64,000 bases of DNA from Adineta vaga (Eukaryota; Animalia; Rotifera). A program made the translations under genes and the position numbers. Location: positions 17,174,001 to 17,238,000 of the forward strand of contig CP075493.1 in assembly GCA_021613535.1 (NCBI GenBank). Reading direction: 5' to 3'. Below, piece after piece: positions 127-58,331 of this stretch. The notes beneath the pieces were generated by a model. It saw only the letters and a list, made by a program, of their open reading frames with translations. It was not told where the DNA came from and made no database searches. Numbering within the stretch: the stretch's first letter is position 1; each line of letters opens with the position of its first letter.

Positions 127-727
127 TTACTCTTTTTCATCATTAATTTCCACCAAATGAACATGGAATGAACCTTTTCGATGTTCTAAAACATTACCTT
201 GAACATGAAAATCAGTTCCCATTGTTAAAATGACTTCATCTTCTTGTTCTTGATCAGTGTAATCTGAGATTTTCTTCCCACTTGATGTTTCAATGAGAAA
301 TATTGTTGAATTTGTTTCATTTCCAAGAAAATCTTTGATCACATGATAACTGAAGATGAACAAGAATTGACGCTCCACCATGTTAATTGTTGATTTTTAG
401 AGAAATTCTCTCCAATATCATTTAAAACACCACGTCAAACATTTTCTCGAACAGTTGGTAAATTGTCAAAGCATCACGATTTTCATCACGTAAAACTTTG
501 TTTAAAACTCGATATAAACTTGTTTCACCCCATTCCATTGTATAAATATAGATGGAAGCAGATTCATCACATGTTAAACCATGTTCCGATGGAAAATGAC
601 AACGTTTTTTTGCTGTTTGCACATAAAAAGGTAGTTGATGAATGTGTAATTGAATTGGTTGTAAAGATTCTTCAAGTGAAACAAGTTTTGCACTTCGATA
701 ACCATAAATAGCTGGAAGTCTTTTGAA
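127..727 (-). pseudogene. NAD(P)+-arginine ADP-ribosyltransferase-like gene, 5'-truncated and frameshifted
   Basis: The reading frame FKRLPAIYGY...HGLTCDESASIYIYTMEWGETSLYRVLNKVLRDENR is followed in another frame by TIFLIETSSGKKISDY..EQEDEVIL (ART E-x-E motif). The frame starts abruptly at a GGGTGTGGGTGTG tract with no ATG. Confidence 0.75.
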
Positions 728-746
728 GGGTGTGGGTGTGGATGTG
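727..746 (+). repeat. Telomere-like G tract at the ART breakpoint
   Basis: AGGGTGTGGGTGTGGATGTG abuts the last recognisable ART codon. Confidence 0.7.
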
Positions 747-1378
747 ATTGTAAATGAATAAATTCAAAGTATTGTTCGATAAAATAATTGATTTGAGCAG
801 AAGTTTGTTCATGATTGGAGATACGAATCGAGGTTATTTGATCAAGTTTCGATGAAATGTATGTTTGACCGATCGAATCAAAATCAGATCGAGATATACA
901 TCAGAAATCAAAGCCATGTATCCGACAATGGTTGGCAAGTATCAAATTAAATCGATAATTAAGTCCGCAAAATTCATGAAAAAGTTCACCCTTTAATAAA
1001 TATTCAAAACATTCCATTGAAGAAATAACTACTGTACATATATGAACTGTTATTGAGTTTTTTCTTCTTTTTTACATGTTACTATGGTAATGACAGAATA
1101 ACAATGAAGAAATCTCAAGCGATAGAGTGCGTCAAAGCAATTTAGTATTGTTAATAGTATGAGTTTTTAGTGGAAATTTCTCCAGAGCTGTGCATAATCA
1201 GTAAATGTGCGGAGCACTCAAATGTTGAAATAAAACATGTATAGAACATAAAAACTGCTCGCTATACATTAACAAACACAGCTTTTGCATAGATGAAGAC
1301 TATATACCAAAACTTCATACTTAATTCATTTGATTATCTTTAAGATGTGTATCAGAGTTCAAATCTTTATACATATCA

Positions 1379-1801
1379 TCAAGATGGATGTATTCTCAGT
1401 ATTTTCCGGCCACATAAATATTCAGTTACCAATATAGTAATAACCGCCAAACTAGCCAGTCCTGCTAATATACCAATTGCAACATTGTATCTCAGGTGTT
1501 GTGATATAGCACCTTTGGTGATTCCAAAAACTAAAATTTTAATCATGGTCGTTCCTGCAACGCAACCGGTTAGGTATAGGGGTTTAGTAGATGAACTGCG
1601 TATGTAAAAGGCTAGACTTACGGAGCCAATATAAGCCAACGCACAAAAAATTAGCAGAACTGCACTAACACTATGCAACCAATTTATACCAGATTCATAT
1701 TGGATATGAATGGAAATTATAATGAAAAGAGTGAGGCCAAGAGATGCCATGTATATGGCAATAAATCTATTTCGACGGTGAAAAGATGAAGTAGAATACA
1801 C
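1379..1801 (-). CDS. Small membrane protein with about 4 TM helices, function unknown
   Basis: 140-aa ORF with four hydrophobic stretches. The true start is uncertain (possibly the internal MASLG). Confidence 0.55.
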   Translation of the reverse strand: MYSTSSFHRRNRFIAIYMASLGLTLFIIISIHIQYESGINWLHSVSAVLLIFCALAYIGSVSLAFYIRSSSTKPLYLTGCVAGTTMIKILVFGITKGAISQHLRYNVAIGILAGLASLAVITILVTEYLCGRKILRIHPS

Positions 1802-2599
1802 TTCACAAATAACTTTTGATTGACTTCGTTAGCTCTTATAGTAAGAAAGCTATGGAATTTGAAATATTTCTCACAAAAAATGAAAACTGACTATAAATTC
1901 AATCTATATTGAGATGCATTCAATAAAAGTCTCTTGGTTTCCTTACAACAAAATGTTTTTCGCTTGGATTCATTTTGTTATGATCAGCTGCAATATCAAC
2001 GCTTTTATCGTATTTTCCATTTTATTTCCGAATACATTGTCAGAAACAGTGTTGTCGATTTTTGGCGTATTTTTCAAGTTTGACTCTCGAGCAAAGAGTT
2101 TACTGTAAAAATATTTCTTTGGCGAACGCGAGATACAACACATTCGAAAATCCTAAACACAATTCAAATTCTCATTTTCATACAGAAATAATATCTCATA
2201 AATACAAAGTTTTTTTGTTTTTGTCACACGTATAATTTATTCAGTTTGACTGATTGAAGGTTCATGATTGAAATTTAGGTATGATTCCGTCGAAAAATTT
2301 TATGGCCGTAGAGATGGATTTATGAGCACATGTTTTATTTAAAAGAAAAATATGTTTTTCTAATCGAGTTAACACTTCTCGGCTACCCTTTATGAATGAA
2401 TGTATCAACGGCAAATATATGACATCATATTGTCGCATGAAAACGCTATTTTGAAGTTTGTTTTTGTATTTATCAAACATTTCGAAACAAAAAAAGAAAT
2501 GTTTTTTAAAGGTGAAATAAAATGTATCAATGTGCTGTATAGTTATGAAGAAAAGCATAGAATGTTTCATTGTTTAGATTTACTGGTCATCGACTATGA

Positions 2600-7700: not shown

Positions 7701-7730
7701 TCTTCTTTTCTATTGTTATTGACTATGAAA

Positions 7731-9911
7731 GGATTGGTGAACGATGAGCACAAGGAACGATGAGCGCGGAACGATGAGCACGGAACGATAAGCACAGAAT
7801 CGATGAGCACAAGGAACGATGAGCACACGAAGTTTGAGCGACATCAATTATGAGCACAAACAAAAAACAAGTAAGAATTTTATTATATAATCAATAAATA
7901 AGCGATACATAGAAGCAAACAAATTTTTCAAGAACTACAGAATAATGTTATGTGCTATTGAGTCGATTTGAGTATCAATATTTGAATGAGGAGTTGAAAT
8001 TAAATTTAATAAACGTGCTTCGAAATGTTGATGTTTCTTCTTAATTTTCGGCGGTTGACCAGCTTTAACTTGTAAAATATCAGCATGAGTATTACTTTCT
8101 TCATCGATTAACTTCTCCAAAAATATCCATAGAGTTGGATGTGCACATTGAAACACAGATCCAATGCGACGGTGATAAGCTTCAGCGGAATTGTTGGTGC
8201 GCATTGATGACTGAGTTGTACGCCCATGCATGTTCCAAAAATCTATCTCAAACATAGGTTTACGTCGCGTATTATTTGGTCGAAGTCGACCTAAAAAACA
8301 ATTTGCTTATGGTTAAATGGAAAGACAAAATGCTTACCAATATATGTTTCTTCAACATAGTCAATCATGTCTTGATACTCGTCACCAAGAGTTAATGATA
8401 ATGTTTCAAATCCTTTAACTACATCATTTAATTCCAAGAATGCTAATGCATCAATTTTATGTATATTATGAGCAAAAGTGGAGTTGGTTTGATATTCATT
8501 CTGTTGTCCTAATGACTAAATTAAGAGGATTAATCAAAGTATTAGTTTTTATAATAAATCATATTTACTTGTAATTTACGATGAATGCTTTGTTTCAGAT
8601 GGAAATAACAACCAGATAATTGTGCATTTGGAAAAATTTTATGGTACGCGTTAACACAGGCTTTTTCATAATCAATCATCATTGTTTCAGGTGACCATCT
8701 CGATGCAAATTTCAGAATTTCAGTAAATAATCTTTCATATGTTTGTGCATCTTTTCGTCGTAATAAAGCATAGCAAACAGGTATAACATGATCTCTGTAA
8801 ACCGCATGTATAATATATAATTGATAAAATATCTCTGGCACAACTTTAAAAGTACCATCTGACATAAAATGTTCTGCATTCTCTAGAATTCCAACCTGTT
8901 CATTACTTGCGAAGATTAAAATTCTGTCTTCGCCTAGATAAAAAAAAGCAAACAAAGATATAACATATCAATCAAGATATCAAAGGTGTACCTGGACCAG
9001 TATCACAACGCAAGAATCGACTGTCCCGTTGAGTACTGCTCAATGTAAGTGGAATTGAAACAAAATTAGGATCATTTGGCACAGCTGCATAATCATTTTT
9101 TGCACGTATTTTTCTAATTCGGCGTTTTATGTGGTCACGAACAGGTAGACGACTAATTGCTTGATCAGACATGCCTGATGAAAAAAAAGCAATCACAATT
9201 TTTCAACTAGAAAAGATATTGTTACCTTTAATACAATTAGTGATGATGATCTCTGGTGTTTCTTGTGTATTCTTGGCGCGATCGATCAATTGTTGCTCGA
9301 ATCTTCGAATTTCAACTGTAATAGCATCGAATCGGCAGGAATGTTCAGTTGGTTCTTTTTTAATATTATTGGTAAAAATACATGTATGTAAACGGGAACG
9401 GCAATGTTGTGTCGAATATCTGCTACAGCGCCAGTAAATTTTATCATCTCTTCGTCTATCTTGAACGTAAGAGTAACCCATATAATTCAGAAGTGGTTTT
9501 CTTTTTGTTGTTCCACGAGTAGTTATTGTTGCCATATTCGAGAAAAGTAAATGAGTAATACGAAAAAAATGCTCTGTCTTTTTCCTCTTATAAGGAAATT
9601 TTTGTCTTATTTGTGAGAAATGAGATTAGTACTCATAATTAGATTAAATTAATTAGTTATCGGATTAAAGCCGAGAGATAATCTTGTCAAGATAATATCA
9701 ATTGACTCTTGCATAAAAATTAGACATATCTAATTAATGTGCTCAACTTTCCTTGTGCTTAACTTTCCCGTGCTCATCTTTCCTTGTGCTTATCGATTCT
9801 GTGCTTATCATTCCGTGTGCTTAACGTTCCGCGCTTATCGTTCCATGTGCTCAACGTTCCGTGCTCATCGTTCCGTGCTCATCGTTCCTTGTGCTCATCG
9901 TTCCGATTCCC
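7731..9911 (-). mobile_element. Mutator-like (MULE) DNA transposon, apparently intact
   Basis: Perfect 9-bp TSD ACTATGAAA at 7722-7730 and 9912-9920. The inverted termini are built from GGAACGATGAGCAC units, and an internal transposase gene is present. Confidence 0.95.
7935..9535 (-). CDS. FLYWCH zinc finger + MULE DDE transposase, 5 exons
   Basis: Motifs GYSY..KIYWRC..C..RLHT..H, MSDGTFKVVP..FYQLYIIH, MIDYEKA, GCYFHLKQ and RTNNSAEAYHR. Four GT-AG introns (9225-9175, 8991-8934, 8568-8516, about 8337-8291) join the ORFs without stops. Confidence 0.9.
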
Positions 9912-10688: not shown

Positions 10689-10751
10689 CAGAATGGGTGT
10701 GGAGTGTTGGCGAATAAGGGTCTTTTGATGATTTATACCCACATTCTCATC
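10689..10751. repeat. Degenerate inverted telomeric cassette
   Basis: GAATGGGTGTGG ... TATACCCACATTCTC, immediately followed by an orphan ORF tail (DEHCQIIRSDPSRAWEC...SE*). Confidence 0.5.
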
Positions 10752-11987
10752 TGATGAACATTGTCAAATCATTCGAAGTGATCCATCGAGGGCATGGGAA
10801 TGTAGTGCTAATTTGGAAATTTGTAATATAGATTGGTCTGAGCATTCAGATGGATCTTTGTCTCCTCGATCAGAATAGTAAAAATAGACTTAACTTTACT
10901 ACTTTAAAATATTATACTTGTTTTAATTTCTCTTCTTTGCGTTGTCTTTATTAAAAATAATTATACACTAGATTTATCTTATCATTTGAAAATGTCCAAA
11001 AGTGGCAGCTAATAGAAGAATTAATTACTCTCATTCATTTTCTCTTAATAAAATAATCTTTTGCAGTAAATAATGCATGATTGATGAATGAAATCAATCT
11101 GGGTCTGGGTGTATTCGCTATCGATGAAATTTTAACCCCGAGGTATAATGGCTTTGTAGATAGGAACTGAAGTTGAGATAGAGTTGGAGCGAGATCTGTA
11201 CGAGAAAGAATGGTTTTTTGCAGAGGGAATTATATAAGAAGATCTTGCAGTGGTAACTGTTAGGAGACGAATGAATTTGGAATGCTACATTAGATATGCG
11301 CGACAGGATATGTTGTGGTATAAATGGAGAATTTCAAATAAAAGCCTCTGTGCGTTTTCTGACACGAAGTTTTCAGTCTGGAAGGTTCTTGGCCATCATC
11401 GAGTACCTCCGCTAGTAGAGTATAAAAATGATGAATTTTTTGTCATGTTTCGATGAAAAGATACGTTCGTACTGTTCAGATTTCTCTGGAAAGTACATAG
11501 AGCGATAGAGTATGAGACGGCACACTTTTTGATGGGAAAAACAATTTTGTTTACGTAAGCTTTCGAAGCGAATGGTACCTCCGAAAGTCGTCCACTCAAT
11601 ATAAGAACTATGCTTAATCGCTTTCTTTTCTGTAATACCAATGTATTGTTATTTAAGTGGAGCAGATCGAAAGTTATTATTAAAATAAAATAAACCTTCA
11701 TGTTTAACATTTAAAAATGTGGCAATATCTTCATAATTTGGTACTGGAACACTTAAACCAACTAAACGAACAACTTCTTGAATTATTTTAATGGTACGAA
11801 TAATTCGTACGATGATCACTTCAAGAATTAGATCACGATCAGAATGTAAAAGATGTATTTCATCAAAAATAATTAAATGAATAGATAAATGTTCATCGCC
11901 TTTACAAGTGATTATATCCCATTGATCAGGTGTACAAACGATTAATTGACTTTTATTGATTTGTTCACGAGTTATTTGATAACCTCT

Positions 11988-12039
11988 AGGGTGTGGGTGT
12001 GGCTAATACACTTCTCTTCATCTACACCCATCCACCCTT
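11988..12039. repeat. Inverted telomeric cassette
   Basis: AGGGTGTGGGTGTGG-spacer-CTACACCCATCCACCCT. Confidence 0.8.
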
Positions 12040-12534
12040 GCTAATGCAGCAAGTTGTTCATTTGCATTATTTGGTACAATTTCAGAAAAACATTTTGATG
12101 ATGAATTTAATACGAATGTTAAAGGAGTTTTCTTTACAATTCAAAAAGCATTACCACTTTTAGTTGATGGAGCTTCTGTTATTCTTAATGGATCAAATTC
12201 TTCAAATAAAGGTGATCCTGAATTAACTGTTTATTGTGCAACAAAAGCTGCTTTACGTTCTTTTGCATGTTGCATGACTGTGGATTTAAAAGAACGAAAA
12301 ATTCGAGTTATTACATTAAGTCCAGGTGCACTTGATACACCTTTTTTAAGAACAATGGGTGGAAATGAACAAGAAATAGAAAAGAATCTTTTCATGTGGC
12401 AAGCAGCAACACCAATGAATCGTCTTGGAACACCTGATGAAGTTGCTAAAGCTGTTGTTTTTCTCGCCTCAGATGATAGTAGTTATATTACTGGAATTGA
12501 ATTATTTGTTGATGAAGGTTTATCACAAATTTAA
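12040..12534 (+). pseudogene. Short-chain dehydrogenase/reductase, bacterial-type, lacking the N-terminal Rossmann motif
   Basis: Open frame from 12040: ANAA..FNTNVKGVFFTIQKALPLL..YCATK (YxxxK)..IRVITLSPG..RLGTPDEVAKAVVFLASDDSSYITG. No TGxxxGIG upstream; the frame begins right after the telomeric cassette. Confidence 0.85.
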
Positions 12535-12606
12535 TTATCTCTCTTAAACATATAATAGAATTCAATGTCATTTATTCGTCTTTATTAAAATAAAAATATA
12601 TTCGTA

Positions 12607-13879
12607 TTAATCATCATCTTCACTTTCACTGCTTTCTTGATTATCAATCGATGTTGGTAAAATGATCGGTTTTAAATCTGGACTACCTTCAAAAGAAGCG
12701 AATTCATGAATTTCACGATATAAAGTTGATAGAAGTGATCGTGCATCTAAAATTGAATTTTGTAAATGAGATGATGTTGATTGTTGAAAACCATTTGAAG
12801 ATGGAAATTTAAATGCAAGAACATTGTGAACAGCTGTTGCTGTATTATTTGGTAAATTAGAAAAACCTTGTCGACCACTTGTAAAATGATACATTCCACC
12901 ACGTAAACGTAATACAAGATGTAAAGTAGTCCCCCTTTCTATAGAATAATCTGAAAGTGTTTTACCATCTTCTAATTGAATACTACGATTTATAAGACGT
13001 TGTTGATCGGGAGGAACTCCTTCTTTGTCTTGAATTAATTCTCTAACAGTAGCTATATCCATTTCTGAATTGACATTTAACGTAAGAACTTTTCCAGTTA
13101 GAGTTTTTATGATTAGTTGAAAATATGAAACATTTGAATGAATATCAGAATCCTTGAAAAAGAAATATGAATGAGTATTTAAAAAGAAAGAAGAAAGGTT
13201 CGTTTACATTTTTATTGATTCTTTTTACCATAAGAATGAAATTCTTTTGATATAATTCTGTTAATAAAATTGTATCTTCTAATTTTATTGATTTTCCTTC
13301 AATCCAATTCTTTTCATTTGGCCTTATATTTCCATTAATTTCACATCTTTTCAATTGAATATCATCAAAATTTCGTTCTTCTTTTAATTTCATTTTAATT
13401 TTATTCATATTATCAGTTAGAAGAACATTTAATGTAATCTTTCCTGGTAAGAAATCTTCATAATATCCAATCCAAAGAATAATTTCTACGTATATAACAA
13501 ATACACATCCATGATCAAATTTTGAAACAGTTGATTTTAATTGACATTCATTTAATGGTGAAATATTCTTGTCTTTTATTATTCCAATTTTAATCAAGTC
13601 TTGTAAATATTTAGGTACATAATCTTTTTTATATTTTCGAAGTATTTTTTCGATTAATTCATGTTCCATGTATTTCTTAGTTGTTCGATTTCCATATGGA
13701 TCAATAAATATAAATGAACGAGATTTGATTTGATTTTCAACTTTTTTCTCAATTTCATATCGACTGGAAAGAATATTTTCTATTTGAATCATTTGATTTT
13801 GAAGATTTTGAACTTGAGATACTAAATCTTCGTAAACAAATGATGTTGACATATTTCGAATTACTGCACTAGTTGCCAT
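12607..13879 (-). CDS. Ubiquitin-domain fusion protein (N-terminal region + ubiquitin + C-terminal tail), 2 exons
   Basis: An intron at about 13207-13153 joins the 253-aa ORF to [55 protein letters not shown]. Start taken as MATSA. Confidence 0.8.
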
Positions 13880-14677
13880 TTGATGAATATCTAAAAGAAA
13901 TTTCATGATTTAGTTTCATTTTAACGAATGATATTCATTCGAATTAAACCTATAGTTTCGTAGATATGAGATAAATAAAAAATGTAGTTATAGTTACTAT
14001 TAATGAACAAAAAGACGATTAAATCGGCGAATATTTATTTTAGAAAGAAGACGAAAAAACCAAATTACGGTACGCAATCAAATGAGTAATGGGTAAAAAA
14101 AATGTTTTATATATGTATAGTACATAGTTGGAATGACGTCATCATTACATTTACAGAAAGAAAGGATGTGAGTCATGGTGTTTGTGATGTATAAAGTATA
14201 TTCCTTTACATAAGAACTTTTCCATATACATTCTATATGTGTTTTTTTCCTATATATGCATATATACGTTTAGTTCTCTATCTTTCATCTGTTTCGGTTG
14301 ATTCCTAATAAAGAACTCTCCATATATTTACTTAAATATATACATTCATCCTACGGAACCTGGACGACGTGACTGTGTTCTTACGTAATAAAAGTCAATG
14401 CTTCTGTATGAGATGCAGGATATCAAAGTGAATTGACTTTGTATGATTAAGTCGTAAGATATTGTGATGTTTGATTCTTGATAACCAGTTGTACTGGTAT
14501 CGACATCTATGCATTCCGAAAATAGATTATATACGAACAAATTTAAATATTAATTTAATACAGGTGGAATAGCGTTTTCAGTACGGATAAATGACATTTC
14601 TGTTTATCCTGTATCGGTGCATTTTTATTTAGCGTTCGACCAAAGGAAACAATTATAAAACTAATTCTGTAGCTAAT

Positions 14678-15535
14678 TTAGTTCCATTTAACACCAATTT
14701 CGTTCAAAAGTTTTTTAGCTGTTTCCACAGCAAGATGGAAACTATCCATGGACGACATATTGGCATAAGTTTCATTCGTGATGCCACTTGGAGCAGTTAG
14801 AGCGACAGCACCCGAGTGAGTTAGATGTGGTTCAACGGTGAGTGAACCACTCCAACTACGAGCAAAAGCATCACGTAAAATCTTCTCGATCTGTGCGTTT
14901 CCTAATCCGATAGGAACGTGCATATTCTCCGAAGTCGAATCTTTCAAATGGAAACTATCGGTTTGCTCCGCCAGACTACGCCATACAGCATAGACATCCT
15001 CATTATTCTGTTGATAGTTATCAAAATCGAAAATCAATTTGAAATTTGCACCGCGAAGTTCAGCAATCTCCTTCACATTAGCTCCGAGGTCGCCATAAAT
15101 ATGACGTTCGTTCTCGTGATAGAGCACTAAATCTAACTTTTTCGCTTCATCACGCAGACGAATAAGGTTTGCCAGTGACTTTTTATGCCATTCTACATGT
15201 GGAATTTCTGTCTTGTTATAGTAAGAGAAAATACGAACTGCATAACAGTCTAGTATCGGTGCAAGAGTGGCAAGATGGTGGAGTTTTTCAATATCAACTT
15301 GTATATCGTCCAGAATATCGATTTTGCCAATCGGTGAGCCAAACATCTGTACGGAAATTCGGGCCTTATCCAATTTATTTTTGATAATTTTTGCCTTATC
15401 GAGAGGCAGTACTGTAATATTGAAACTATCGATGTTGCGAATATCAATGTGTGAAAGACCAGCACGTGTCGCAGCAGTTATTTGCTCGTCGCATGAAAGA
15501 TTGGCTTCATCAGTAAACGCTGAAAGTATCCACAT
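14678..15535 (-). CDS. Sugar-phosphate isomerase/epimerase (xylose-isomerase-like TIM barrel), bacterial-type
   Basis: Motifs LSAFTDE, GSPIGK, VRIFSYY, LYHENE, FDFDN, FHLKD, VPIGLG and LTVEPHL. Intronless, with GC above the flanks. Confidence 0.85.
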   Translation of the reverse strand: MWILSAFTDEANLSCDEQITAATRAGLSHIDIRNIDSFNITVLPLDKAKIIKNKLDKARISVQMFGSPIGKIDILDDIQVDIEKLHHLATLAPILDCYAVRIFSYYNKTEIPHVEWHKKSLANLIRLRDEAKKLDLVLYHENERHIYGDLGANVKEIAELRGANFKLIFDFDNYQQNNEDVYAVWRSLAEQTDSFHLKDSTSENMHVPIGLGNAQIEKILRDAFARSWSGSLTVEPHLTHSGAVALTAPSGITNETYANMSSMDSFHLAVETAKKLLNEIGVKWN

Positions 15536-15788
15536 GATGATATTACTGATAATACCAAGTCGTGTCTATTCTAAATCTATTTACACAAAATAATTGGAAA
15601 ATATTCATCTGTTGTTTTCTATATGAAACTTTGACTTGAGTGTGATTATCAACATAAGAGCAACGATAGTAAAATATATAGAAATGAAAAATAATGTTTT
15701 TTTTTCTCTCATATCATATCACAATCGTTGTGAAATGAGATAATATATTCACATGGTTTGATAACGAAATAAATTATCATTTGCAACA

Positions 15789-15848
15789 CATCTTGAGGGT
15801 ATGGGTCAATGTGGAGAAGAATGTAAAAGATATCGACATCCACATCCT
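15789..15848. repeat. Degenerate inverted telomeric cassette with CATCTTGA extension
   Basis: CATCTTGAGGGTATGGGT ... ACATCCACATCCT. Confidence 0.6.
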
Positions 15849-15991
15849 GTAATTATTATTGAGTAGAACGGATAGTATTTTTTTTTGTTTTTTATTCGTT
15901 TTGTGATGAATAATGTCTACGCCTCGATGTTTTTTTCGATAATATCACTATAGAAAATACTTGTATGCGTGATTAATATATTTGATATATC

Positions 15992-16366
15992 ATGGCAACT
16001 GTTGCAAAGAATACAACTGAAAAAGCACCTAGTGTCTTTTCATATTGTGATTGTAAAGAATTAGCTAATCATGTTTATAAACATTTAAAATCAAAATTAA
16101 AATGGCCTGTTTGGATGGATAAACATGATGCTCATAGTGGTAGTTTTAGTTCAAAGTAAAATATTTTATTAGTTTTGTTTTTCGAAAAAATGAAAATTTC
16201 TTTTCTTTTATTATTTTAGTATCGCTGAAGCTATTGAAAAATCTGCTGCTTTTGTATTTTTTCTCACTCCTAACTATCAAGCTACACCATAGTTTGTGAA
16301 AGAGAATTAACATATGCTGTAAATTTACGTAAACCACTTATTCCAATTATTGTTGATGAATCAAAT
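15992..16366 (+). pseudogene. TIR (TIR_2-type) domain gene fragment, 3'-truncated
   Basis: Not in the ORF track. MATVAKN..VFSYC..KELANHVYKHLK..WPVWMDK, an intron at about 16156-16219, then IAEAIEKSAAFVFFLTPNYQ..CERELTYAVNLRKPLIPIIVDES. It has a frameshift/stop and ends at a telomeric cassette. Confidence 0.75.
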
Positions 16367-16464
16367 AGGGTGTGGGTGTGGGTGGGTGCAGATGGATGTG
16401 AATGAATGATAGATGTACACCAGAAACCTCACCCACACCTACATCTACACCCACATTCACCCCC
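16367..16464. repeat. Inverted telomeric cassette
   Basis: AGGGTGTGGGTGTGGGTGGGTG-spacer-CACCCACACCTACATCTACACCCACATTCACCCC. Confidence 0.85.
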
Positions 16465-36663: not shown

Positions 36664-36664
36664 T

Positions 36665-40900: not shown

Positions 40901-43900
40901 AATAGAATCAATCATAAGAATACTATTAAAAAGGTTAAGTGTTGCCCAAATTTCTGTTGCTTGTTTAACCCAATCAGTAAGACTCTTAAATTTTTTTTCA
41001 TTTTTACTAACTATAACAGCTTCATCGAAAACAATTTTTCGTAAATCTTGAATAAGTTCAGCAAATTTTGCATTTGTTGTTGATGTTTGAAAAAGTTCTT
41101 TATCTTTATTATAAATTGAATCTTTATTGAATGCAGTTAACATTAGGAAAAAAGCTTTTTCTTCTTTAAAATCAAGAACTTGAGCTAAATCAACTTGACA
41201 TAATTCGCTAACTTCTTTTAATTCTCTTTTAATACTATCAATCATTTCTTTTTGTTTATCAACATTTAAATCCATCATATTTCTTAAAATAAATATAATT
41301 ATTGGACGAGTTTTAAACATTTTCAATTGATTTGCAGCAAAAAGACTAATTGTTAAAATTTTTTTCATTGCTGCATTTATTTCTCCATTTAAATTAATAA
41401 GCATAATTTGTGAACATGCCATTGAAAATACAGTTAATTTTTTATCATATTCTTCATTAGCTTTTTCAATCGACATAAGTCCTTCTGTATCAAGTACCAT
41501 TAATGTTTTTGCATTTGGATAATTAGTTTTGAATAAAGAAGCATATAAACCTTTTGTACAACGACCAGCACTCATTTGAAAATTACTTCCAAATAACATA
41601 TTTAATAGAGTTGATTTTCCTGTACTTTGTGGTCCAATAACAGAAACAACATATGGTTCATCAATTTCACCAAGTTTACTTTCAAGTCTTCGAAATATTT
41701 CAGCAACAATTTTTGTATTAAATTCATTATTATCACCATCAATAATTTCAATTTCATTACCTTTACTTATATATTCAACAAATGCATTTATGTATGAATC
41801 TTTGTTGAATGAATTTATAGAAGATTGTTTTGTCAGAAAATCGTCATCGCCAAACATTGATAGTAATTCTCGCATAAAAAAGTCTTTATTAATTGTTTGT
41901 TTATCGATTGTATCCGAATTTTCAATTTTTTGTTTTTCTAATTCTTCTTTAAACCGTTTAGCTTCAGTCAATTCAGCTGAATTTTTATTTTGCATTTCTA
42001 ATGTTTGAATTTTTGTTTGATAAATCTTTAGTTTATCCAAAATAGCATTTCGTTGTTTAAATAATGGAGATAAAATCGGATTTTGCCAAGCACATACTCG
42101 TTTATCCATTTCGATAATACAATCAAATTTTTGTTCGATAAATATTTTATTATACTCCAATACTAAATCACTGGGTACAATTAAAGCTTTATTTTTGGCT
42201 AGCTGATTAATAGATTGATCAATTAAACTTAATGTGACAGCTTTTTCTTCAGAATCTTTACCGATAAGTTTAGCTTTCTTTCTTCTTTCTTCTTGAATTT
42301 TATTATTTGCTTCAATATGTTTAAATAAATACGATTGTAAATTTCGCATGTTTCGATCAATACTTTTTAATAATTTATCAATATGGATAGAAAATTTTTT
42401 TGTTTGTTCATCTTGAATATCAAAATAAACAGTATCAAATTGTTGTGAATATACTTTATTTTCAATTTCAATATAAACATTATAATCTTCTTCTCGTAAT
42501 TTACCGTTATTTGGCAACTTAGCAGTTTTTTCTCCAATCCCAATTAATGTAAAAAGTTTTTCTCTTAAAGTCACTAAATTTGAATCGAACTCAGGATTGC
42601 CATGTTCAATTTTACATATAGATAAAATATGTTCAGTTTTCTTTTGTTGAAGTTTTTCTTTGTGTTCGTTAGTTAATCGTCTATAATCCCTCATGATGCA
42701 AATAATTTGATTATCATCGAATGAGAACGATTTTAATATTTTAAATATCATATTCGTTTCTTCGAATGATGTTGTTTGCAGAAATATCCAACAGTTTTTC
42801 ATAGGTAGTATATAACAAAATATTTTTAGAAGATTTTCCAGTTGAGGAACATGACCATGAACATCAAATATAGTAAAACCACAAGAAAATTCTGGTGTAG
42901 AAAAGATAGCATCAATACCACCATTTATTCTTCCAACTTTATTAGTAATAAATTGTGTATTAAAAATTTTATTTAATAGTGTACTTTTACCAATAGAATT
43001 TGATCCTAAAGAAATAACAATTGGACAATCAGTAGATAAACAATATGAATAAGCTCGAAGAGGTATTTTATACATTAATTTGTTATTAATTATCCATTCA
43101 TATGCAAATGGTAAAGCAATACTGAGTTTTTTTAATAAAGAAATAATATAGGTTTGATGATTTTTATAGCGTTCAATCATACATACTATGATTGTTTTGT
43201 AATCTGTTCCATAAACTGATAATGTATCATCCCAAAATATTTCCGAGGCACTAAGTCCAGAAAGATCAATACCTTTTTTTATTTTGTTCACTATAAATGG
43301 TAACATTATATCGATCAATGGTTGATTATGTTCATTTATTCCTTGTTTAACAATATTTTGAAATTTTAGAAAATCTAAAAGTATTATTTTTGAAAACAAA
43401 TCTTCCGAATAATATTCATCACAACCAAGCATTATGTTTTGAAGATCTTTTATACTTGTATATTTCTCATCATCTTCTTTTGGTTTACTAACCATATTTT
43501 GTATCTTTTCATTGTTGTTAATCGCATTGATTAATAGAGATAAATGTCTTTTAATCATTTTAGGAGTAATTAATTCAATAGCTTGTTCAATTCCGTTTTC
43601 AAGAAGACATTGAATAAATTGATTAAACAAAGATTGTTCTAAGACTTTGAAATTATTATCTTTCCAAATTTTAGCAAATTCAATTTCTAGTAATTCTTTG
43701 TTTGTTTTTTCTTCCGATAATAAACAACCCGTATCAGTTATGTTATTGATTTGGTTACGAATATCTTTGTTATTTGTTAATTCAGATTTAATTTGCATAA
43801 AATCTTCAGGTGTACATTCATCTTCAAGCATTTTTAATCCAGTAGTAAAGTTTAAATTTAATTCAGAAACTATCATATCTATCATATTTTCAGTAATATG

Positions 43901-46241
43901 ATGTTTTTTCAAAATGTTTTTTAAAATACTACTTGAATTCTCAATTGGCTCCGAGGACAATTTTAAGTTCCACAGTTTTTTCAATGTTTCGTCTGATTGA
44001 ATCTTGTTAATGAGATTTTTAATTTTTTTAGGAATAACAATATTTTTCAGGTGATCATTAAGAATATCAGTAATTTTATCTTGATCATCAAATAATAAGT
44101 TGAAGAGCGACTCATAATCGACTTTATCTGAAGGAACATTTTCAGATTTGAAATGTTTAATCATTTCAATTCTAAATTCGTTATAAATATTGCTAGCAGG
44201 ATCCTGTTTATATTGTTTTCTAGCCTGTCTAATTTCTTTAATCTTCTCACTTTCCATAAAATTATTTTTGAATTGTTCGAAATCAACAGGTAAAAGATAA
44301 TCTTCCATTATTTCGAAAATAGTAATATCGTCATCAAATAATCGTTGAGCTATGTTGTGAAAATCCAGCTCGTCAGAAATTTGGTATCGTCGCCACAATG
44401 ATTTCAGCTCAGTTTCGAATTGAGCAAAATAGTCACATTCTGGTAATGCATTTGCGTCAGATGATTTTGCTTTCCAAATGTTCTTTATTTCAGGATGGTT
44501 AATAAATTTTTCTTGAAAAGATTTGTATTGATGGTCCATCAATATATCTTTAATATTCTCCAACGCTTCTAACTTTTCATCGTACAGAAGATTGCTAACT
44601 TGATTAATGTCTATTTCTTCTAGTGGAGGTTCGTATTCGCGTAGAAGATCAATTAGTGTATTTCGAAATTTTTCAAATAAATTTTCAGTTTCAGTTGTAG
44701 CTAAAATACAAAAGCGAAATGAATAAAGGGTAGAATGTCCATTTAACAATGACGCCTAGATTTTATTCTTTGAAAAATGGCCTTCCGATGAAATGTTCTT
44801 GAGAAAAATGTCTTTTGAAATATAGTTCCATATGTAAAAATATCTTTCATCCTGAATTCAAGGTATTAAATAAGATCAGGTCGATGTGCAGATGATGCTA
44901 TAGTCCAAGTAGATCTTACAAATAATCAGGACGGGTGTGAGTGAAAGTTAAACCTAATATCCACACCCACACGCTCAAGTGCTACAAAATGGCCCAAAGT
45001 ATTCAAGTAGCTGGAAGTACGTCAAATTAGCTCAAAGTATTTGTAAAGTAGCTCAAAATATGCGTAAAGTAACTGAAAGTACTCAAAAGTAACATAAAGT
45101 AACTTCAAGTCCAAAAGTCCGCTGTTTCCTCCTTGGTGTGTGCATTCATCTAACTCATGTATGTCTCACAGCCACATCCTCCAGTCTTCGCACCAAACCT
45201 TTTAGTCCGTATGATGTATAATACTCCTTTCAAAATCTGGTCGAAGTCAGTAGGCTTACCTGAATTCGTTGTCGGTGATGATGACGCATTGTTATGAATT
45301 GATTCGTTGGATTCTTGTATTGAAAAAGACTCCGGTGTGGAGACAGGAGACTCGATCATAGCTTTAACTGCTTCGAAAAGTGGATTGTATCTGACCGGTT
45401 GAATCCTTGCCTTCACTGATTCAATACCAGCTAACCAACCCATTTTAGTAACATTCTCTGCTGCTAATTTGTACAGTTGATTCTTTGAGTCAGGAATTTT
45501 ATGTTGTTTGAACAGTTGTGGAATTTTTTCAAAATAATAAATACGTAACGCAAGAAATAATGCTGATTGAGGATCGTTCAGCTGTTCATTTAAATCATCT
45601 TGTGAAATGTATTGAGAAAATTTATGGCAAGCCTGTAATCCCTCATTTGTGATACATCTCCATAAATTCGTAAAAACGCTCTCATTCTTCAAACAATGAT
45701 CATCAATACCACAAAACAACATTTGCAGCACAACTGCCAGGATTGAAGATGACTGTGTGTAAGTACTACCATATTCAGCTGTGTGTTGAAGAACAGCCTC
45801 AAAATGGTCACTATTTTCGTTCTTTACTGTGGCCATAAATTCCCAGATCTTTGGTTGACTTAAACAAGCTGCTTCCCATTGCTCACCGACATACTGTTTA
45901 ATTACTTTTAATAGCGGACTTTCTTTCGTTAACTCTGATGTAAGAATTGAATGACGATCAGCAGAATTGTCAATTTCAGCTGAGTAAACTTCAGGAATAA
46001 GGACACCTTGATATTTAACTAATGCTTGGCGACCATTTGTCAGCACGTCGGAAATGATTTGGTCTTTTTCTTCTATGAGTGTCAACTCCAAAATCTGACT
46101 AATTTCTTCCACTATTTTACCATCAACTGGTGTGCTTGAAGTCATATACGTGTTTGATTCTGTAGATTGAGTAGTACAGTTTGTGACTGATGAAATTATT
46201 GAAATACTGTCAATATCAATAGTCGGCCCATCAGACGCCAT
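37949..46241 (-). CDS. Very large inducible GTPase (VLIG/GVIN-like) of about 2577 aa with two GTPase-like domains and an inserted YfaP/DUF2135-like domain
   Basis: Exon 1 (46241-45260) and exon 2 (44700-37949) splice in phase (TTNSA-TTE). P-loops LGSNSIGKSTLLN and VIGPQSTGKSTLLNMLFG..SAGRCTKG..LDTEGL; VLIG C-terminal GC.EQCPFC...C..H..H..HR; then ISLIWHDSNDLDLHV..LDRDMN..PIENVYF..G.YTVSVHYFSG. Confidence 0.9.
44933..44979. repeat. Inverted telomeric cassette within the GTPase intron
   Basis: GGGTGTGAGTG-spacer-CCACACCCACACGCTCAAG. Confidence 0.7.
44980..45132. repeat. About 11-bp degenerate tandem repeat (AAAGTAGCTCA-like), probably the subterminal end of a truncated DNA transposon
   Basis: Repeated AAAGTA cores ending in CCGCTGTTTCCTCC. 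The other end is absent beyond the cassette. Confidence 0.45.
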
Positions 46242-47335: not shown

Positions 47336-47689
47336 ACTGCACTGAAAAAAAAGCGAGGAATAATTAACTATCAAAAAGTGTTTTTGCCCACTAAATTAAT
47401 TTATTAGCGTGCTCTAACCTTTCATAAAACCTTTTTGTCAGAGAATCAGGTAAGAGTGTGTCCCGTTGCAAACTGATATACTCTTGTACTGGTTTTTGTC
47501 TTGATAAACCCTGTTCTGAATAATTCAACAGAATTAACCCTCAAATACAGATTTCACCGGTATCTATAACAAATGCACCATCTTGAGGGTTGATTCTGTT
47601 GAATTATACAAATACATGCGGAAACTTCGAATTTTATCCGAAAGTTATGTGTACTGCAAAAAGTGTATGAGATAGAAGAAACAGGAAAA

Positions 47690-47895
47690 TATCAGTATTT
47701 TTTCAATAACTCAGCGATGGCTCGTCCAATCAGGCTCATCTTCGAATTCGAGCGAGATATTGGCATAACAATACTCTAGCAAATTTCCTCATAATCGGAT
47801 TAGCCGTTCGGGAGTTACCATGTAAACGAACCGATGGACGGACACGTCGAGTGATTCTAGTAATGCGCTCACTTTTCCTGTACACTTGAAAAAGT
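47690..47895 (+). mobile_element. HINE/DINE-1-like repeat, homologous to 48600-48798
   Basis: Both share GCTCATCTTCGAA.TCGA..GAGATATTG, AAATTTC..AATCGGAT, GAGTTA...TGTAAACG and a GGACGGACAC microsatellite. Confidence 0.55.
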
Positions 47896-48058
47896 ACAAG
47901 GTTCTGAATCTCTTATCAATACCATATTGTTGGTACCTGGATTTTGTTGATCTGAGACCTTCAAATTCAAAGAAATTCTGTTATGAATGAATTTCAACAT
48001 TTTCCACCAACTAACCCACTTAAAATGACTTTTATAAAGTGAAATAATACAAAGAAAA

Positions 48059-48596
48059 CTTGGCTGAAAGTCACCAAGGTCTTCCTGCTGACCCCCACTG
48101 TGATGATTTTTGATAAACGACGCTTAAGCGCTGATGGAGATACGCTTTTCTTTATTTTTTCATATCATATATCGCATCGTTCTCACACAAAACGGCCACT
48201 TATATACCCTTCCGAAAGAGAAAAGGACAAAAGATTATAAGAATAGAATACAGAATAAGGACGAAGCGCAAAGTAAGGACAAATATAAGCATTTGACGTT
48301 TTTTCACTGATTCGTCACACTCACCCTAATGATGCCTACCACATTTTGACCTTTGTCTAGACCTAGGGAAGCACCACGAAAAGTTTCACAGCGTTATCTA
48401 TCACGGAACCACCTGGGTGAAATTTCACCCAGACCACCTCTCCCTACCCCCTACTCTTATACCAACACTTGCTCGACCTTTTACTAGACCTAGGGAAGCA
48501 CCATGGAAAGTTTGATGATCTTAGCTATTACAGAAACTGAATGGATAGCGAACAGGCAGACAAACAGAGAAACATGTTACTTTATATATAGAGATA
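48059..48596 (-). mobile_element. Non-autonomous Helitron-like element with a nested solo-LTR-like repeat
   Basis: The minus strand starts A-TCTCTATATATAAAA followed by a TGTY microsatellite. It has an internal duplicated CTAGACCTAGGGAAGCACCA and a 3' hairpin near 48059-48078. Confidence 0.45.
48099..48319 (+). mobile_element. About 220-bp TG...CA repeat, solo-LTR-like (copy 2)
   Basis: TGTGATGA...TCGTCACA, with flanks CCCAC/CTCAC (near 5-bp TSD). Confidence 0.6.
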
Positions 48597-48599
48597 TTG

Positions 48600-48798
48600 A
48601 GAAAATTTTCTGTAAGTGAGCAATAGTACAACCGACTGAGCTCATCTTCGAACTCGACTGAGATATTGATGAAACAATTATGTGTACAAAATTTCAGCTC
48701 AATCGGATGTGGGTATGAAGAGTTATCGTGTAAACGGCCGGACGGACACACAGACCGATTGTAGTAGTGTACTTACTTTTTGAGTACACTAAAAAGGT
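48600..48798 (+). mobile_element. HINE/DINE-1-like repeat
   Basis: GGACGGACAC microsatellite and terminal hairpin GTGTACT..TTTTTGAGTACAC. Homologous to the copies at 47690 and 18646. Confidence 0.55.
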
Positions 48799-49312
48799 TC
48801 TTTTAAAGGGTAGAACACGTTGATAAACGAATTTGGCAGTCAAAAACGACTTTTAAAGGCTATTACATGTCGCATTTTTTTCTTCATTGCAGTAATAAGT
48901 TTCGTCAAAATCGTGCAACTAAAATGTTGATTGTATGTTGTGAAACAAAATGAAGTGTTTTTTTCTTCTTACACTCTGAAAATGGCTAAGGTGGGCTTTT
49001 GCCCACTGTGCCGAATCAGAATATATGCATTGTTTTTTCTTTAAACGAGTTTCGTTTGAGACGCAATAAATCAAAATAAATTTCAAAAATACTAACATTC
49101 ATTTGCGCATATAGAGGACAAAACCCTACTATGTATTTTGTTCTCTGGGTTTCTTACCGTAATCGGGGATAAAAATATGTGAATGAAGGAGAAAGACCAG
49201 CAGATAAAAGATAAGAAGATAAAGAGAGCACTGCTGCAAAAATCATGACTCTTATTCTAATCAGAAACAAAAAAACTATTCAGCTTCTGTGTCCTGTCTG
49301 GAACACATGATC

Positions 49313-49351
49313 GGGTGTGAGGGTGAGGATGCGGGATAAGGGTGAGGGTGT
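49313..49351 (+). repeat. Telomere-like G tract with TGAGGG variants
   Basis: GGGTGTGAGGGTGAGGATGCGGGATAAGGGTGAGGGTGT. Confidence 0.6.
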
Positions 49352-49456
49352 AAATCAAGGTAAAACAGATTAATTTATATATGTAAGATACAAATTAATC
49401 TGCTAATTTCAACTTTTGTTGTTTAACAAACGATATAAATCAACAATGCTAAATCA

Positions 49457-49550
49457 AATCATGAGGGTGCGGGTGGGTGTGAATGTGGAATGTTGGTGTG
49501 AGTACTCCTGTCTTCTGTCACCCCACACCCACACCCACACCCTCAAGATT
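49457..49550. repeat. Inverted telomeric cassette with the extension on both arms
   Basis: AATCATGAGGGTGCGGGTGGGTGTG ... CCCCACACCCACACCCACACCCTCAAGATT. Confidence 0.85.
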
Positions 49551-55126: not shown

Positions 55127-55335
55127 CGAACATGTATTCGTTATTGAAGGACAAGTTTTTGGACGTTATGAAATGATTTTTCATAGGTTAATTAGAAAAT
55201 ATTTAATTGATAAACTCTTGAGAATGAATATGTAACAATGTTGATTTTATAGTATCCCCACTCTCACACCCATCACATCCTGAAAATGGCTGCTGTAGCA
55301 ATGATGAATTGAGTCTTGTGCGGAGTTTAGTTGTA

Positions 55336-55392
55336 ATCTTGGGTGAGTGTGGGTAATACTCGTCTTTTCACTCATACCCACACTCACACCCT
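55336..55392. repeat. Inverted telomeric cassette
   Basis: ATCTTGGGTGAGTGTGGGT-spacer-ATACCCACACTCACACCCT. It is followed by a lone hAT-like end (..CCTGGCTACGCCATTG at about 55461-55477). Confidence 0.8.
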
Positions 55393-55547
55393 TTGTCAAG
55401 TTAAACATCTTTTGCCTATCGACAAAAATTTCTCTCGAAATTAGTCGTTTGTCGGGAAATCCTGGCTACGCCATTGTTCTAATGTGAGAGAGAGGGATTC
55501 AGTATTATGTCTTCAAATTCTTTTGTAAAAATAGTAAAATATATTTA

Positions 55548-55612
55548 AGGGTGGGTGTGGGTGTGCATATTTTCTTTCATTACCTTCACCTACACCCACA
55601 CATATCAAATAC
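55548..55612. repeat. Inverted telomeric cassette
   Basis: AGGGTGGGTGTGGGTGTG-spacer-CACCTACACCCACACA. Confidence 0.8.
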
Positions 55613-56126
55613 ATAAAAAGTGTTTCTTTTTATTTTTTTGTCTCTTCAAACACACTTATATGGATATGCACTTTAAAAAAGATAATAAAAGATCCTTTTC
55701 TCGTTTTTATTCATTTTCAAGAAAGATTACTTCACGAGAAGAATGCTATTAACTTTTTAAGGGAAAGTAACACAGACTTCTTCTGTATATGAAAAATCGA
55801 CGATATTTTTCTATGAAACTATAGCTTTTATCATACTTTTTACCATTTCGCATTGCTTGGACACCTATTGAATAGATGCAATGTAGAAAACTGAATTGAA
55901 TATGTGAATTTCGAAACCTTTGAAGTGGTCAAGATAATGAAAGATAGGTTTCTTTAACGTTTTTAGAGGTTTTTTAAAGTTCAGTAGTAGAATGTTTCTA
56001 TAACATTCATTATTTAATAGTGATAGACTCATTTTCCGATGTACTCTGATTTGATTGAGAATATTTTGAAGATCATTTATAATTGAAGTTGTAGAGAGAA
56101 TGTAATAGTTTATTGATATTCCGTAG

Positions 56127-58017
56127 TTAACGAATCCATAACTTAACAAAGGCTTCACAGCAATCATAGTCTGCTACTTTAATTGTGAATGGTAGAGTCG
56201 ATTTCAACCATACGACAAGATCAGGACATCTTCTTCGTGATGAGAAAGAATAGACGTATTGTTCTTCGTAACTTTGTACCATTAATAGTCGAAGATTGGT
56301 CATTTTGTTAATAAGCTCAATTATACATTCCTTGTTCTGAACATTGATGGTCAGTACTTCACATTGTTTGTTCAATGGCGAATGACTCAATTCAGTGCAT
56401 TGTTGAAGATTAAAAAATATGCCATCAGTAAGTGAAACAACTTTGGGCAAATTGAGATGATGATTCGATAGATATTTTAAATCAACTAGAAAATATTTTA
56501 AAGTTGTCTTCGAAGAATCTGTAATATGCAATGAATGTAGATTTGGTGTTTGTTTGAGTAAGATTCTTAAATCAGATTGATTTGTGTAGTCAGCAGTCAG
56601 TTGAACATCAAGTGAAGTTAATTGATCAAGCTGTGGGATAAACTTGGAAAAGTGCTTATCGAATGGAAGTCTTACATGAACTTCAGAAGTATTGGTTAAA
56701 TTCGAAATCTGACGTGCAATATCGAAAGAAGGACTCAACGCTGTTTGTTTTAAATCTTCTCTCCCATTGAAATTCAATCGAAATATATTCATAATTCTTT
56801 TACCATAGTCAATTGTATCCAAATTGTCTGAATTTGAGAGTTTTATTGGAGAGTAAATTTTTATAAAAGAATCATGAACAGATTTAGACAGCCAGTAATC
56901 ATTTTCATAGGGACAAGTTGATGCAGACCAAAGACAATCACTCAGAGCCATTGAAGAAATTGAAAAGTAAGGTAAAGTATAATATAAAATGTAATATCGC
57001 CCTTGAATATCTGATTTCAAATGACATTGAATAAACCATTGGTCTTTTTCAAGCCAAAACTGACTTTGAAATGAGCGTAGATGATCATTCACTAACTCTT
57101 TTAATTTTTCTAATCCAATCCAATAAATGGCCATTGTACATCGAAATATTTTCAGTTTAGGTAAATCATTATTAATAATATTTTCCCATTGATATCCATC
57201 CATGAACATGGATAATGATTTGACTGTTAAGCAACATAAATTAGGTACTTTTTGTAAAAACATCTTTAGTGTATGTGTCCCACCTGTCCTAAAAGGAATC
57301 GAATTTCAATGTAACTAGCGAAGGAAGAATTGGTATAGAATTAAATTCACTCCCAAAATCTGAATAAATATGGAGATACCGAAGATGAGATGTGTAGTGC
57401 AACATCTTAGATAATAAATTCTTATTTATAGAATTGAAATTGTCAATAGATAAATATTTAATAGACGACGAATTCACTGATGGACAAAGCTGTTGATTTC
57501 TTTTACAAACTCTTGGAGTAAGATAAAAATTTATTAATGTTGACATATTCCATATTTTGTCAATTAGACTTTGATTGACATTATCATTTGACGATAAACA
57601 ACAATCAATTAATTTAATATGAATGAGACGACGAAGATAACTACATTCTAGGACTATTTTTCTCATAATCTTTTCTGAATGAATATGATATAATGAAAGT
57701 GATTGTAAATTAATAAATTGACAAAAACGAAAATTATAATAACGGAAAAAGTCGATTTGGAATGGAGTTTCATTACCATTTGACACAATAATAGAAGTAA
57801 TCTGATTAACCATTTTTGATAGCTCTGATTGAAAAAAGATGTGGGAATCATTGAATGATATGAAACGAAGATCAAGACGACGAGACATTTGTAGATAGGT
57901 AAAAATGAGTTGGTTTAAACGTGAATTAAGAGATTGAAAGGAACGTAAAATGTGGTCCCTACTAAGATAATTAAAAATATCAAATAACAATTCATTAGCT
58001 AATAACTCTAATTTCAT
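56127..58017 (-). pseudogene. F-box/LRR-like protein gene with a single frameshift
   Basis: MKLELLANELLFDIFNYL..FQSLNSRLN (F-box-like), then FLQKVPNL..L..MDGYQWE..LPKLKIF..FWL. The two ORFs are offset by one base at a T-run near 57290 (a real mutation or an assembly error). Confidence 0.75.
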
Positions 58018-58293
58018 TGTTATTTTTGATCAGATGGGTGGTATACAGTCGGAAGTGAAAATAAAAGCATCGACTAGTAATGAAAGTCCTTTTATTTCTC
58101 TTTTTCTTCTCTTCTCCTTCTATTTTCCACATCGTTTTTCTGTTCACTCACGTCAGTTAATACGTTGACAAAACTATAATCATGATTTTTCTTTCTCGTT
58201 CAGTTAATAAATAAAATATCCCTTTGAAGATTCGGAAATCATCTAACTATGAAGATGTATGAATTTTTCTTAACTAATTCACAAGTGATGCAC

Positions 58294-58331
58294 GGGTGTG
58301 GGTGTGAGGGTTGTTTTGATACACCCACCCC
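58294..58331. repeat. Inverted telomeric cassette
   Basis: GGGTGTGGGTGTGAGGG-TTGTTTTGAT-ACACCCACCCC. Confidence 0.8.

Follow-up and report, generated by a model that had tools for sequence, protein, structure and literature searches.

Inverted telomeric-repeat cassettes at junctions between unrelated DNA blocks in a subtelomeric region of Adineta vaga

Bdelloid rotifers survive massive chromosome breakage and carry the most foreign genes of any animal, mostly in subtelomeric DNA; to our knowledge, the way in which fragments are assembled in these subtelomeres is not known. The subject of this analysis is a 64,000-nucleotide stretch of chromosome 1 of the bdelloid Adineta vaga (C1:17174001-17238000, hereafter the window), in which tracts of telomeric repeat occur in head-to-head pairs. 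Each pair, termed a cassette, consists of a G-rich tract (G arm), a short core and a C-rich tract (C arm), and each parts two unrelated DNA blocks, which are often truncated genes. The published chromosome-level assembly of this species comprises six chromosomes of ~101 Mb in total with TGTGGG repeats (PMC8494291), and short telomeric stretches, gene fragments and foreign genes are known in bdelloid subtelomeres (PMC2861651, PMC8494291). Telomeric repeats have been found at fresh deletion breakpoints in A. vaga lines, for which neotelomere formation was proposed (PMC13564844). Endonuclease-deficient Penelope-like elements prime on exposed ends, telomeric repeats then being added to their 5' ends (PMC3846280, PMC6431247), and head-to-head arrays mark fusions, as at human 2q13 (PMC9413910) and in telomere-spanning arm fusions of cancer genomes (PMC11293586).

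In de novo telomere addition, as it occurs in yeast, in ciliate and nematode DNA elimination and in human cells and as proposed for A. vaga (PMC13564844, PMC11347171), G-strand repeats stand directly on the 3' end of truncated unique sequence, and the window resembles it in this; a junction homology of 0-4 nt may be a further likeness. The healed ends in the window differ: they are internal, stand in head-to-head pairs that recur about every 3 kb, and carry a fixed leader sequence and an obligatory core. Yeast reportedly offers a parallel in that its new telomeres begin with a selected part of the template (Kramer and Haber, 1993). Interstitial telomeric sequences left by end-to-end fusion (PMC9413910, PMC11293586) share the G-then-C arrangement of the species' own repeat; there, however, whole chromosome ends with subtelomeric flanks are involved and the arrays meet directly, whereas the cassettes are flanked by cut genes and small fragments, the core is at least 8 nt long (one locus has 0-7 nt) and the sites number hundreds to thousands. 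Athena/Terminon arrays (PMC6431247, PMC3846280) belong to the same organism group and compartment and likewise show telomeric stretches between units and captured host genes. Their tracts are direct and are accompanied by reverse transcriptase (RT) and a hammerhead motif, whereas those described here are inverted, and neither a hammerhead motif in the window nor an RT domain in its ten largest open reading frames was found. Oxytricha TBE1 and Tetrahymena Tel-1 are segments bounded by inverted telomeric repeats in the order C...G and are true transposons with a transposase and a target-site duplication (TSD); the segments between cassettes are bounded in the same way but are heterogeneous gene pieces. 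Finally, short interstitial telomeric repeats of primates and rodents were reportedly inserted by telomerase during double-strand-break repair without a TSD (Nergadze et al., 2004, 2007). The likeness would lie in telomerase products at repaired breaks, but those repeats have a single orientation in contiguous sequence, whereas the cassettes are paired and inverted, with unrelated flanks. The paired, polar leader-and-core cassette and its density were not found described in the literature searched; PNAS 2007 and MBE 2017 lay outside this search, and an earlier description is possible.

The window lies ~0.9 Mb from the right end of the 18,146,847-bp chromosome and is subtelomeric; the assembly used here totals 100.8 Mb in six contigs (six chromosomes) with a GC content of 31%. 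An initial annotation, made from the letters of the window, had listed about 20 tract positions. All 20 are telomere-like, 17 of them clearly and three (10689, 11101 and 55255) in a weak or degenerate form, and the repeat is, as had been stated, the species' own. When up to two mismatches to GGGTGTGGGTG are allowed, the window contains 21 G tracts and 26 C tracts, compared with ~2.3 and ~1.4 in order-3 Markov shuffles, and 20 G-then-C pairings within 150 nt (14 distinct cassettes), compared with 0.02 by shuffle. The single C-then-G adjacency (14 versus 1) is formed by a solo C tract beside the next cassette. All of the tracts are internal and none lies at a chromosome terminus.

The genome-wide scan for polarity proposed with the annotation was run using the exact pattern GGGTGTGGGTG N8-70 CACCCACACCC, which is matched 650 times per strand (control, 6), while the reverse order, C then G, is matched seven times, a ratio of about 90 to 1. 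The claim that complete copies always have the same polarity is uninformative on strand, because an inverted repeat is identical on both strands; the real contrast is that between G-then-C and C-then-G. On chromosome 1 the matches fall in the terminal 0.7 Mb at the left and from ~11.5 Mb onward at the right, with one at 2.16 Mb. The density of about one cassette per 3 kb in the window is accompanied by hundreds to thousands of sites genome-wide. Short-read contigs from three independent studies span 16326-17000 with zero differences, and therefore at least the cassette at 16368-16476 is no assembly artefact.

The cassettes are junctions between unrelated blocks, not insertions. To the right of one of them, the Pfam match of an SDR gene at 12040 begins at profile position 84-87, and the paralogues L002 and L003 (95% identity) extend upstream into sequence that the window lacks. 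To its left, on the opposite strand to SDR, the DEAD fragment ending at 11987 matches from profile position 88 of 167, and a locus on chromosome 3 (L004; 81% identity to the helicase fragment) extends past the break. The TIR gene is cut at 16367, where its paralogue (L030, the open reading frame of which carries TIR_2) goes on for ~65 more codons. The stretch 12039-16367 is a 4.3-kb copy cut inside two genes, with both of its 3' ends extended by G-strand repeats; the cassette at 15790-15850 is also present in the paralogous block and is therefore older than the duplication. Homology to a GPCR paralogue stops at 35426, and the Pfam match of the HODM_asu-like fragment at 58335 begins at profile position 56. 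Truncation with an extending paralogue was read at the sequence level at window positions 12038, 11980-88 and 16367 and at L008:366 (compared with L007). Blocks also stop or start a few bases from cassette edges at 19394, 19822, 19895, 33081, 33121, 35426, 35489, 36609 and 58332, and those to the left and right have their matches on different chromosomes.

Taken over the distinct homology blocks, 12 of 127 ends lie within 8 nt of a cassette edge, compared with 2.3 expected (P = 3e-6); local-only data give nine of 146 compared with 3.0. The flanks map to different loci in all four cassettes that are informative on both sides, for example to chromosome 3 on one side and to the far arm of chromosome 1 on the other. 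At 12 of 12 junctions read outward the cut sequence runs on from its 3' end into the G-rich strand, which is the equivalent of the G-then-C polarity (650 versus 7). Since the G strand continues the 3' end of each block, an inter-cassette block looks like a capped linear molecule, 5'-(CCCACA)n-block-(TGTGGG)n-3'.

These comparisons also qualify what had been annotated at the tract edges. Tracts at the exact ends of truncated reading frames are borne out for SDR, TIR and DUF3445 by paralogue and/or Pfam coordinates, and the DEAD-helicase end at 11987 and the end of GPCR homology at 35426 are additions to the annotated list; a possible ART fragment (425-727, to the left of the tract at 728) and a KDZ frame proposed at 36665 have no Pfam match, and the GPCR frame at 49553 is a candidate. 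Of three supposed half-deleted transposons, support was obtained for the repeat fragment at 19394-19597 (92% identity to three other copies) only. The proposal that each scar joins the two sides of one deletion has to be abandoned, with flanks homologous to different loci and the missing 5' half of SDR, or a reciprocal break product, not found in a search across the assembly. The absence of a TSD stands: the longest direct word in a cassette's own 20-nt flanks averages 4.09 nt, compared with 4.04 nt in mismatched pairs. Among the genome matches no subject locus resumes beyond any cassette, so that no empty site was seen. Logan contigs from runs of the laboratory clone match the assembly, and the divergent isolate X16 is without most of the block. 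In a comparison with other species for the state before breakage, only a cupin-ADH gene pair is syntenic.

The arms range from 11 nt to about 390 nt (L028:5787) and are built of irregular units (TGTGGG, TGGG, TGTGTGGG and TGAGGG). Arm lengths within a cassette are uncorrelated (rho = 0.09), and the complementarity between the two arms of a pair is 10.35, compared with 10.17 between arms of other pairs (P = 0.29). In these respects the two arms behave much as independent telomerase products would. A hairpin or terminal-inverted-repeat unit with mirrored arms was considered and is ruled out by the same complementarity and arm-length test.

The description of the tracts as plain telomere repeats needs amendment in one respect, as a constant non-repeat leader, ATCTTGA, precedes the repeats and opens the tracts. 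Among 55 well-defined outer ends, 37 have A immediately before the first GGG, 22 have TTGA, 12 CTTGA and eight the full ATCTTGA, far above the prediction from base composition. The combination ATCTTGAGGGTG occurs at 1152 genome sites, compared with two in the control, and telomeric cassettes are flanked by the leader also in Adineta steineri and in two further contigs, which are bdelloid-like and carry the orthologous ADH gene. Within cassettes it is found on neither, one or both sides at approximately the rates expected of independent acquisition (counted by eye), and no consistent association with the side of the core's tail was seen by eye. Junctions defined by paralogues enter ATCTTGA/GGGTG at graded points (...a/GGGTG, ...at/CTTGAGGG, ...ctt/GAGGG and ...tc/TTGAAGG, the stroke marking the boundary). 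Exact ATCTTGAGGGTG also occurs in the interior of chromosome 1 at approximately one site per 0.5 Mb (e.g. 2446963, 3887626, 5290257 and 9065135/9065605), and one such interior site could be a telomerase RNA gene.

Two candidate sources of the leader were rejected. It is not the 5' end of a ribozyme-cleaved RNA, judging from an Rfam scan of the window that contained no hammerhead motif, and it is not the 3' end of a 220-bp repeat that adjoins a cassette, since only one of nine exact copies of this repeat carries the leader after the repeat end. The repeat itself (~220 bp) lies at 36387-36609 and at 48099-48319 (within 47592-48807) and is part of a subtelomeric repeat of ~1.2 kb with hundreds of candidate copies and the natural end ...CACTGATTCGTCACA. 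What follows this end in the nine exact copies is a G tract in two, a short CTCACCC tract in one and otherwise unrelated DNA.

The syntenic pair of cupin and zinc-ADH genes (window 20413-22289; L035:9142-11195; L036:9052-11193) is retained across bdelloids, with neighbours that all differ. In L036 the ADH stop codon is followed after ~60 bp by a cassette; in A. steineri (L035) the cassettes are found upstream of the cupin gene, and ADH is followed by no more than a degenerate G tract. Outside the rotifers, this ADH is closest to protist proteins, with about 45-55% identity.

The core has a skewed composition, its left part being C-free and its right part G-free (31 violations in 827 nt, compared with 73 +- 8 in controls), so that cores look like degenerate A-rich continuations of each G strand. 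The annotated statement that the spacer differs between copies is correct within the window; genome-wide, recurrent core families are found (TTAGATAGATGTAGTA, GTGAAGAAGATGTA, TTAAGAGTATAGYC, GCGTGCAAGTCAGTGTC and ATTTATTSATCAAT). A 41-bp copy of 11991-12031 with 100% identity is present at C3:18389085 with different flanks, and other flanks again are seen in read contigs; perfect copies of window cassettes on chromosome 3 measure 35-41 bp. An origin of the cores as local templated insertions of the Pol-theta type was rejected, as there is no excess of shared words with the surrounding +-1 kb.

Long arms and inversions are also seen elsewhere on chromosome 1. At L028:5787-6234 (C1:17159787-17160234) an irregular, internal (TGTGGG)n array of ~390 bp leads into a family-A core and then a C arm of 60 nt. 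Directly before this array lie 272 bp that are a 98% inverted copy of L028:2175-2446, which resembles a fold-back inversion followed by healing. A 4.6-kb inverted duplication with 99.4% identity (L017:1-4598 and L018:803-5388, at C1:16.93 and 16.95 Mb), its copies ~20 kb apart, contains several telomeric tracts.

On this sequence evidence, the cassettes are probably head-to-head joins of telomerase-extended DNA ends. The initial annotation had envisaged telomere addition to both ends followed by ligation, and addition followed by head-to-head joining agrees with the identity of the repeat, the gene cuts, the G-strand 3' extension, the lack of a TSD or empty site and the polarity of ~90:1. Plain ligation of two neo-telomeres is too simple in view of the obligatory and recurrent cores. 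In the mechanism proposed here, breaks caused by desiccation or other damage would leave chromosome ends and free fragments, and telomerase would prime on their 3' ends, which would match the 3' part of its template over 0-4 nt. In its first round it would copy the leader ATCTTGA, then GGGTG and then ordinary TGTGGG repeats. The telomerase RNA predicted from this is 5'-...CACCCACACCCUCAAGAU...-3', with the predicted template flank ...CCCUCAAGAU. The leader is most simply read as the first-round copy of the 3' part of this predicted template, with which non-telomeric 3' ends would pair; if so, the variant repeat TGAGGG would be explained as well.

Two ends extended in this way would then be joined, G tract to C tract; the join always carries a short A/T- and purine-rich 'tail' drawn from a limited repertoire. 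The tail might come from older cassettes through invasion by a G tail (by synthesis-dependent strand annealing or gene conversion) or from read-through by a reverse transcriptase. Three candidate origins of the core are considered: copying of an older cassette by an invading G tail, gene conversion between cassettes, and read-through or template switching by a reverse transcriptase. The first of these would also generate a 3' end rich in C, with which a second G tail could pair. Through repeated rounds the subtelomere would become a mosaic in which gene fragments stand beside repeats and, probably, foreign genes.

Several observations weigh against joining of two independently extended ends. 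A spacer of 0-7 nt is found at one locus genome-wide, compared with the 650 matches with 8-70 nt, and the same core families recur at many loci with unrelated flanks. The copy of 33082-33122 on chromosome 3 has the left flank and the whole cassette in common with the window but not the other flank. In L040, a contig from another bdelloid, two long cassettes (14100-14400), inverted copies of each other, meet directly at the palindrome TCAAGATCTTGA, an arrangement that telomerase acting on both ends of a fragment could not produce; in the same contig, a C arm ending in TCAAGA looks like a former physical DNA end. Nine further junctions are placed by match coordinates. The leader could just as well be the fixed terminus of a ready-made unit, trimmed during joining by microhomology, and the graded register of the junctions is also expected from such trimming.

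A pre-formed unit is the alternative that best survives these comparisons, although it is on balance considered unlikely. A complete unit (leader, G arm, core, C arm and leader) would be captured as filler or adaptor at breaks joined by microhomology; it could be a small double-stranded or hairpin DNA or a short RNA reverse-transcribed by an Athena- or telomerase-type enzyme primed on a free 3' end. The flanks would still be break junctions, but the arms would not have been made in place on each end. Obligatory cores that fall into families, the leader with its 1152 sites and cores not copied from the local +-1 kb are all in keeping with such a unit, and the leader-to-leader abutment in L040 and the flank shared with chromosome 3 fit a pre-formed or RT-made unit better. 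Priming on exposed ends through reverse-complement telomeric repeats is moreover known for endonuclease-deficient Penelope-like elements (PMC6431247, PMC3846280). Arms of 11 to about 390 nt that are no more like their own partner than like others and are uncorrelated in length speak against it, as does the independent occurrence of the leader on each side (eye count), which is contrary to a template with one fixed 5' end. The window also contains no hammerhead ribozyme or other Rfam family, and the leader lies outside the one retroelement-like repeat that adjoins a cassette. A pre-formed unit and the joining of telomerase-extended ends agree that the cassettes mark joins of broken ends.

The joining of extended ends may tentatively be developed into a dedicated 'cap-and-join' route in bdelloids. 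Every free end would receive a template-encoded leader, repeats and a non-repeat tail from a telomerase-type reverse transcriptase; the tails would pair and the ends be sealed, so that any linear fragment, whether endogenous or foreign, could be concatenated into the subtelomeres. Such a route could account for the massive horizontal uptake of genes, and the sequences flanking the template in the telomerase RNA could be deduced from the leader and tails. This extension is speculative and is put forward as a suggestion.

Serial terminal addition of Athena/Terminon elements is very improbable as a source of the cassettes. Telomeric repeats capping 5'-truncated copies, together with (ACACCC)n 3' tails and host genes caught between, form the known architecture of bdelloid chromosome ends (PMC6431247, PMC5537684), and one repeat copy in the window ends in the short C-type tract CTCACCC, as such 3' ends do. 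This architecture, however, predicts direct tracts (C...C on the sense strand) and not G-then-C pairs, so that for the paired cassettes it is contradicted by polarity. Between the cassettes lie ordinary gene fragments that have intact paralogues elsewhere, and in the window no Rfam family reaches its gathering score, no hammerhead was found and no RT domain is present in the ten largest open reading frames, to which that scan was limited.

Still less probable is a miniature inverted-repeat transposable element or other terminal-inverted-repeat DNA transposon with telomere-like termini that inserts with a TSD. The cassettes are indeed multi-copy and short, with inverted termini, a conserved outer motif and recurrent internal sequences; the possibility is nevertheless excluded because there is no TSD, there are no empty sites (the flanks of four of four informative cassettes lying at different loci), the genes are truly truncated and the arms are not mirrored copies of each other. 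Short spliceosomal introns or introner-type elements interrupting reading frames can be dismissed, for although the cassettes adjoin the ends of open frames and CTTGAG/GT...CTCAAG offers GT...AG on either strand, nothing resumes after the cassette: frames and homology never continue, the paralogues go on with sequence that is absent from the window and the far flank is another gene on the other strand.

The cassettes provide a sequence-level record of subtelomere assembly, in which each junction shows the ends that received repeats, the register in which this happened and the partners that were brought together. From them the template of the telomerase RNA and the sequences beside it can be predicted in testable form; they also give a marker with which events of repair or capture can be dated and counted, and a possible explanation of how foreign DNA becomes chromosomal. 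They may also bear on annotation. Terminal-inverted-repeat DNA transposons make up 48% of the transposable elements in the published assembly (PMC8494291), and automated tools could mis-call blocks with inverted telomeric arms as such elements.

Table 1. Telomeric tracts, cassettes and adjoining gene fragments in the window (positions in the window; a stroke marks a junction).
Feature	Positions	Strand	Remarks
Solo G tract	728-760		GGGTGTGGGTGTGGATGTG; no clear C arm
Weak, degenerate G...C cassette	10695-10750		Decayed beyond scoring
Weak G tract	11101-11140		GGGTCTGGGTG
DEAD-helicase gene fragment	11614-11987	-	Cut at cassette; 81% to L004
Cassette joining helicase and SDR fragments	11989-12038		Core like purine-rich family-C tails (by eye)
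4.3-kb fragment	12039-16367		SDR cut at left, TIR gene cut at right; copy of C1:711.4-717.0 kb (92-95%)
Old decayed cassette with ATCTTGA leader	15790-15850		Inside 4.3-kb block
Cassette after truncated TIR gene	16368-16476		Junction ...CAAATA/GGGTGTGGG
Cassette	19348-19396		Core like purine-rich family-C tails (by eye); repeat fragment begins at right edge
Solo C tract	19616-19656		Leader CCCTCAAG; inner end joined to non-telomeric DNA
Cassette, family-A core CTACATCTATCTAA	19823-19897		Blocks end at 19822 and start at 19895, different loci
Cassette, leaders on both sides, family-G core	23036-23102		
Cassette	33082-33122		Homology up to 33081 on the left and from 33121 on the right, different loci
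Cassette, decayed leaders on both sides, family-A-like core	35427-35492		GPCR homology ends at 35426; unrelated block from 35489
Cassette, left leader, family-H core	36610-36665		Follows natural end of 220-bp repeat
Cassette	44933-44978		Flanks without informative homologues in the search
Solo G tract rich in TGAGGG	49313-49352		
Cassette, leaders on both sides, 24-nt perfect C arm	49462-49548		
Weak solo C tract	55255-55275		
Cassette	55341-55393		
Cassette	55549-55602		
Cassette	58294-58333		35-bp 100% copy at C3:17309397
HODM_asu-like (formerly DUF3445) gene fragment	58335-58745	+	Begins at cassette; without first ~55 profile positions

Between two of the cassettes lies an uninterrupted open reading frame of 2266 amino acids (37949-44749, minus strand) with a URGCP-like/RHD3-type GTPase domain. 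A unit of 14-16 nt (GAACGATGAGCACA) forms tandem arrays at 7739-7831 and 9738-9905; the two arrays are inverted relative to each other, lie ~2 kb apart and may be the ends of an element. At 29529-29879 and 31335-31462 there are further tandem repeats, whose periods are 10, 21-23 and 50 and whose units resemble ACGCGTTTAG.

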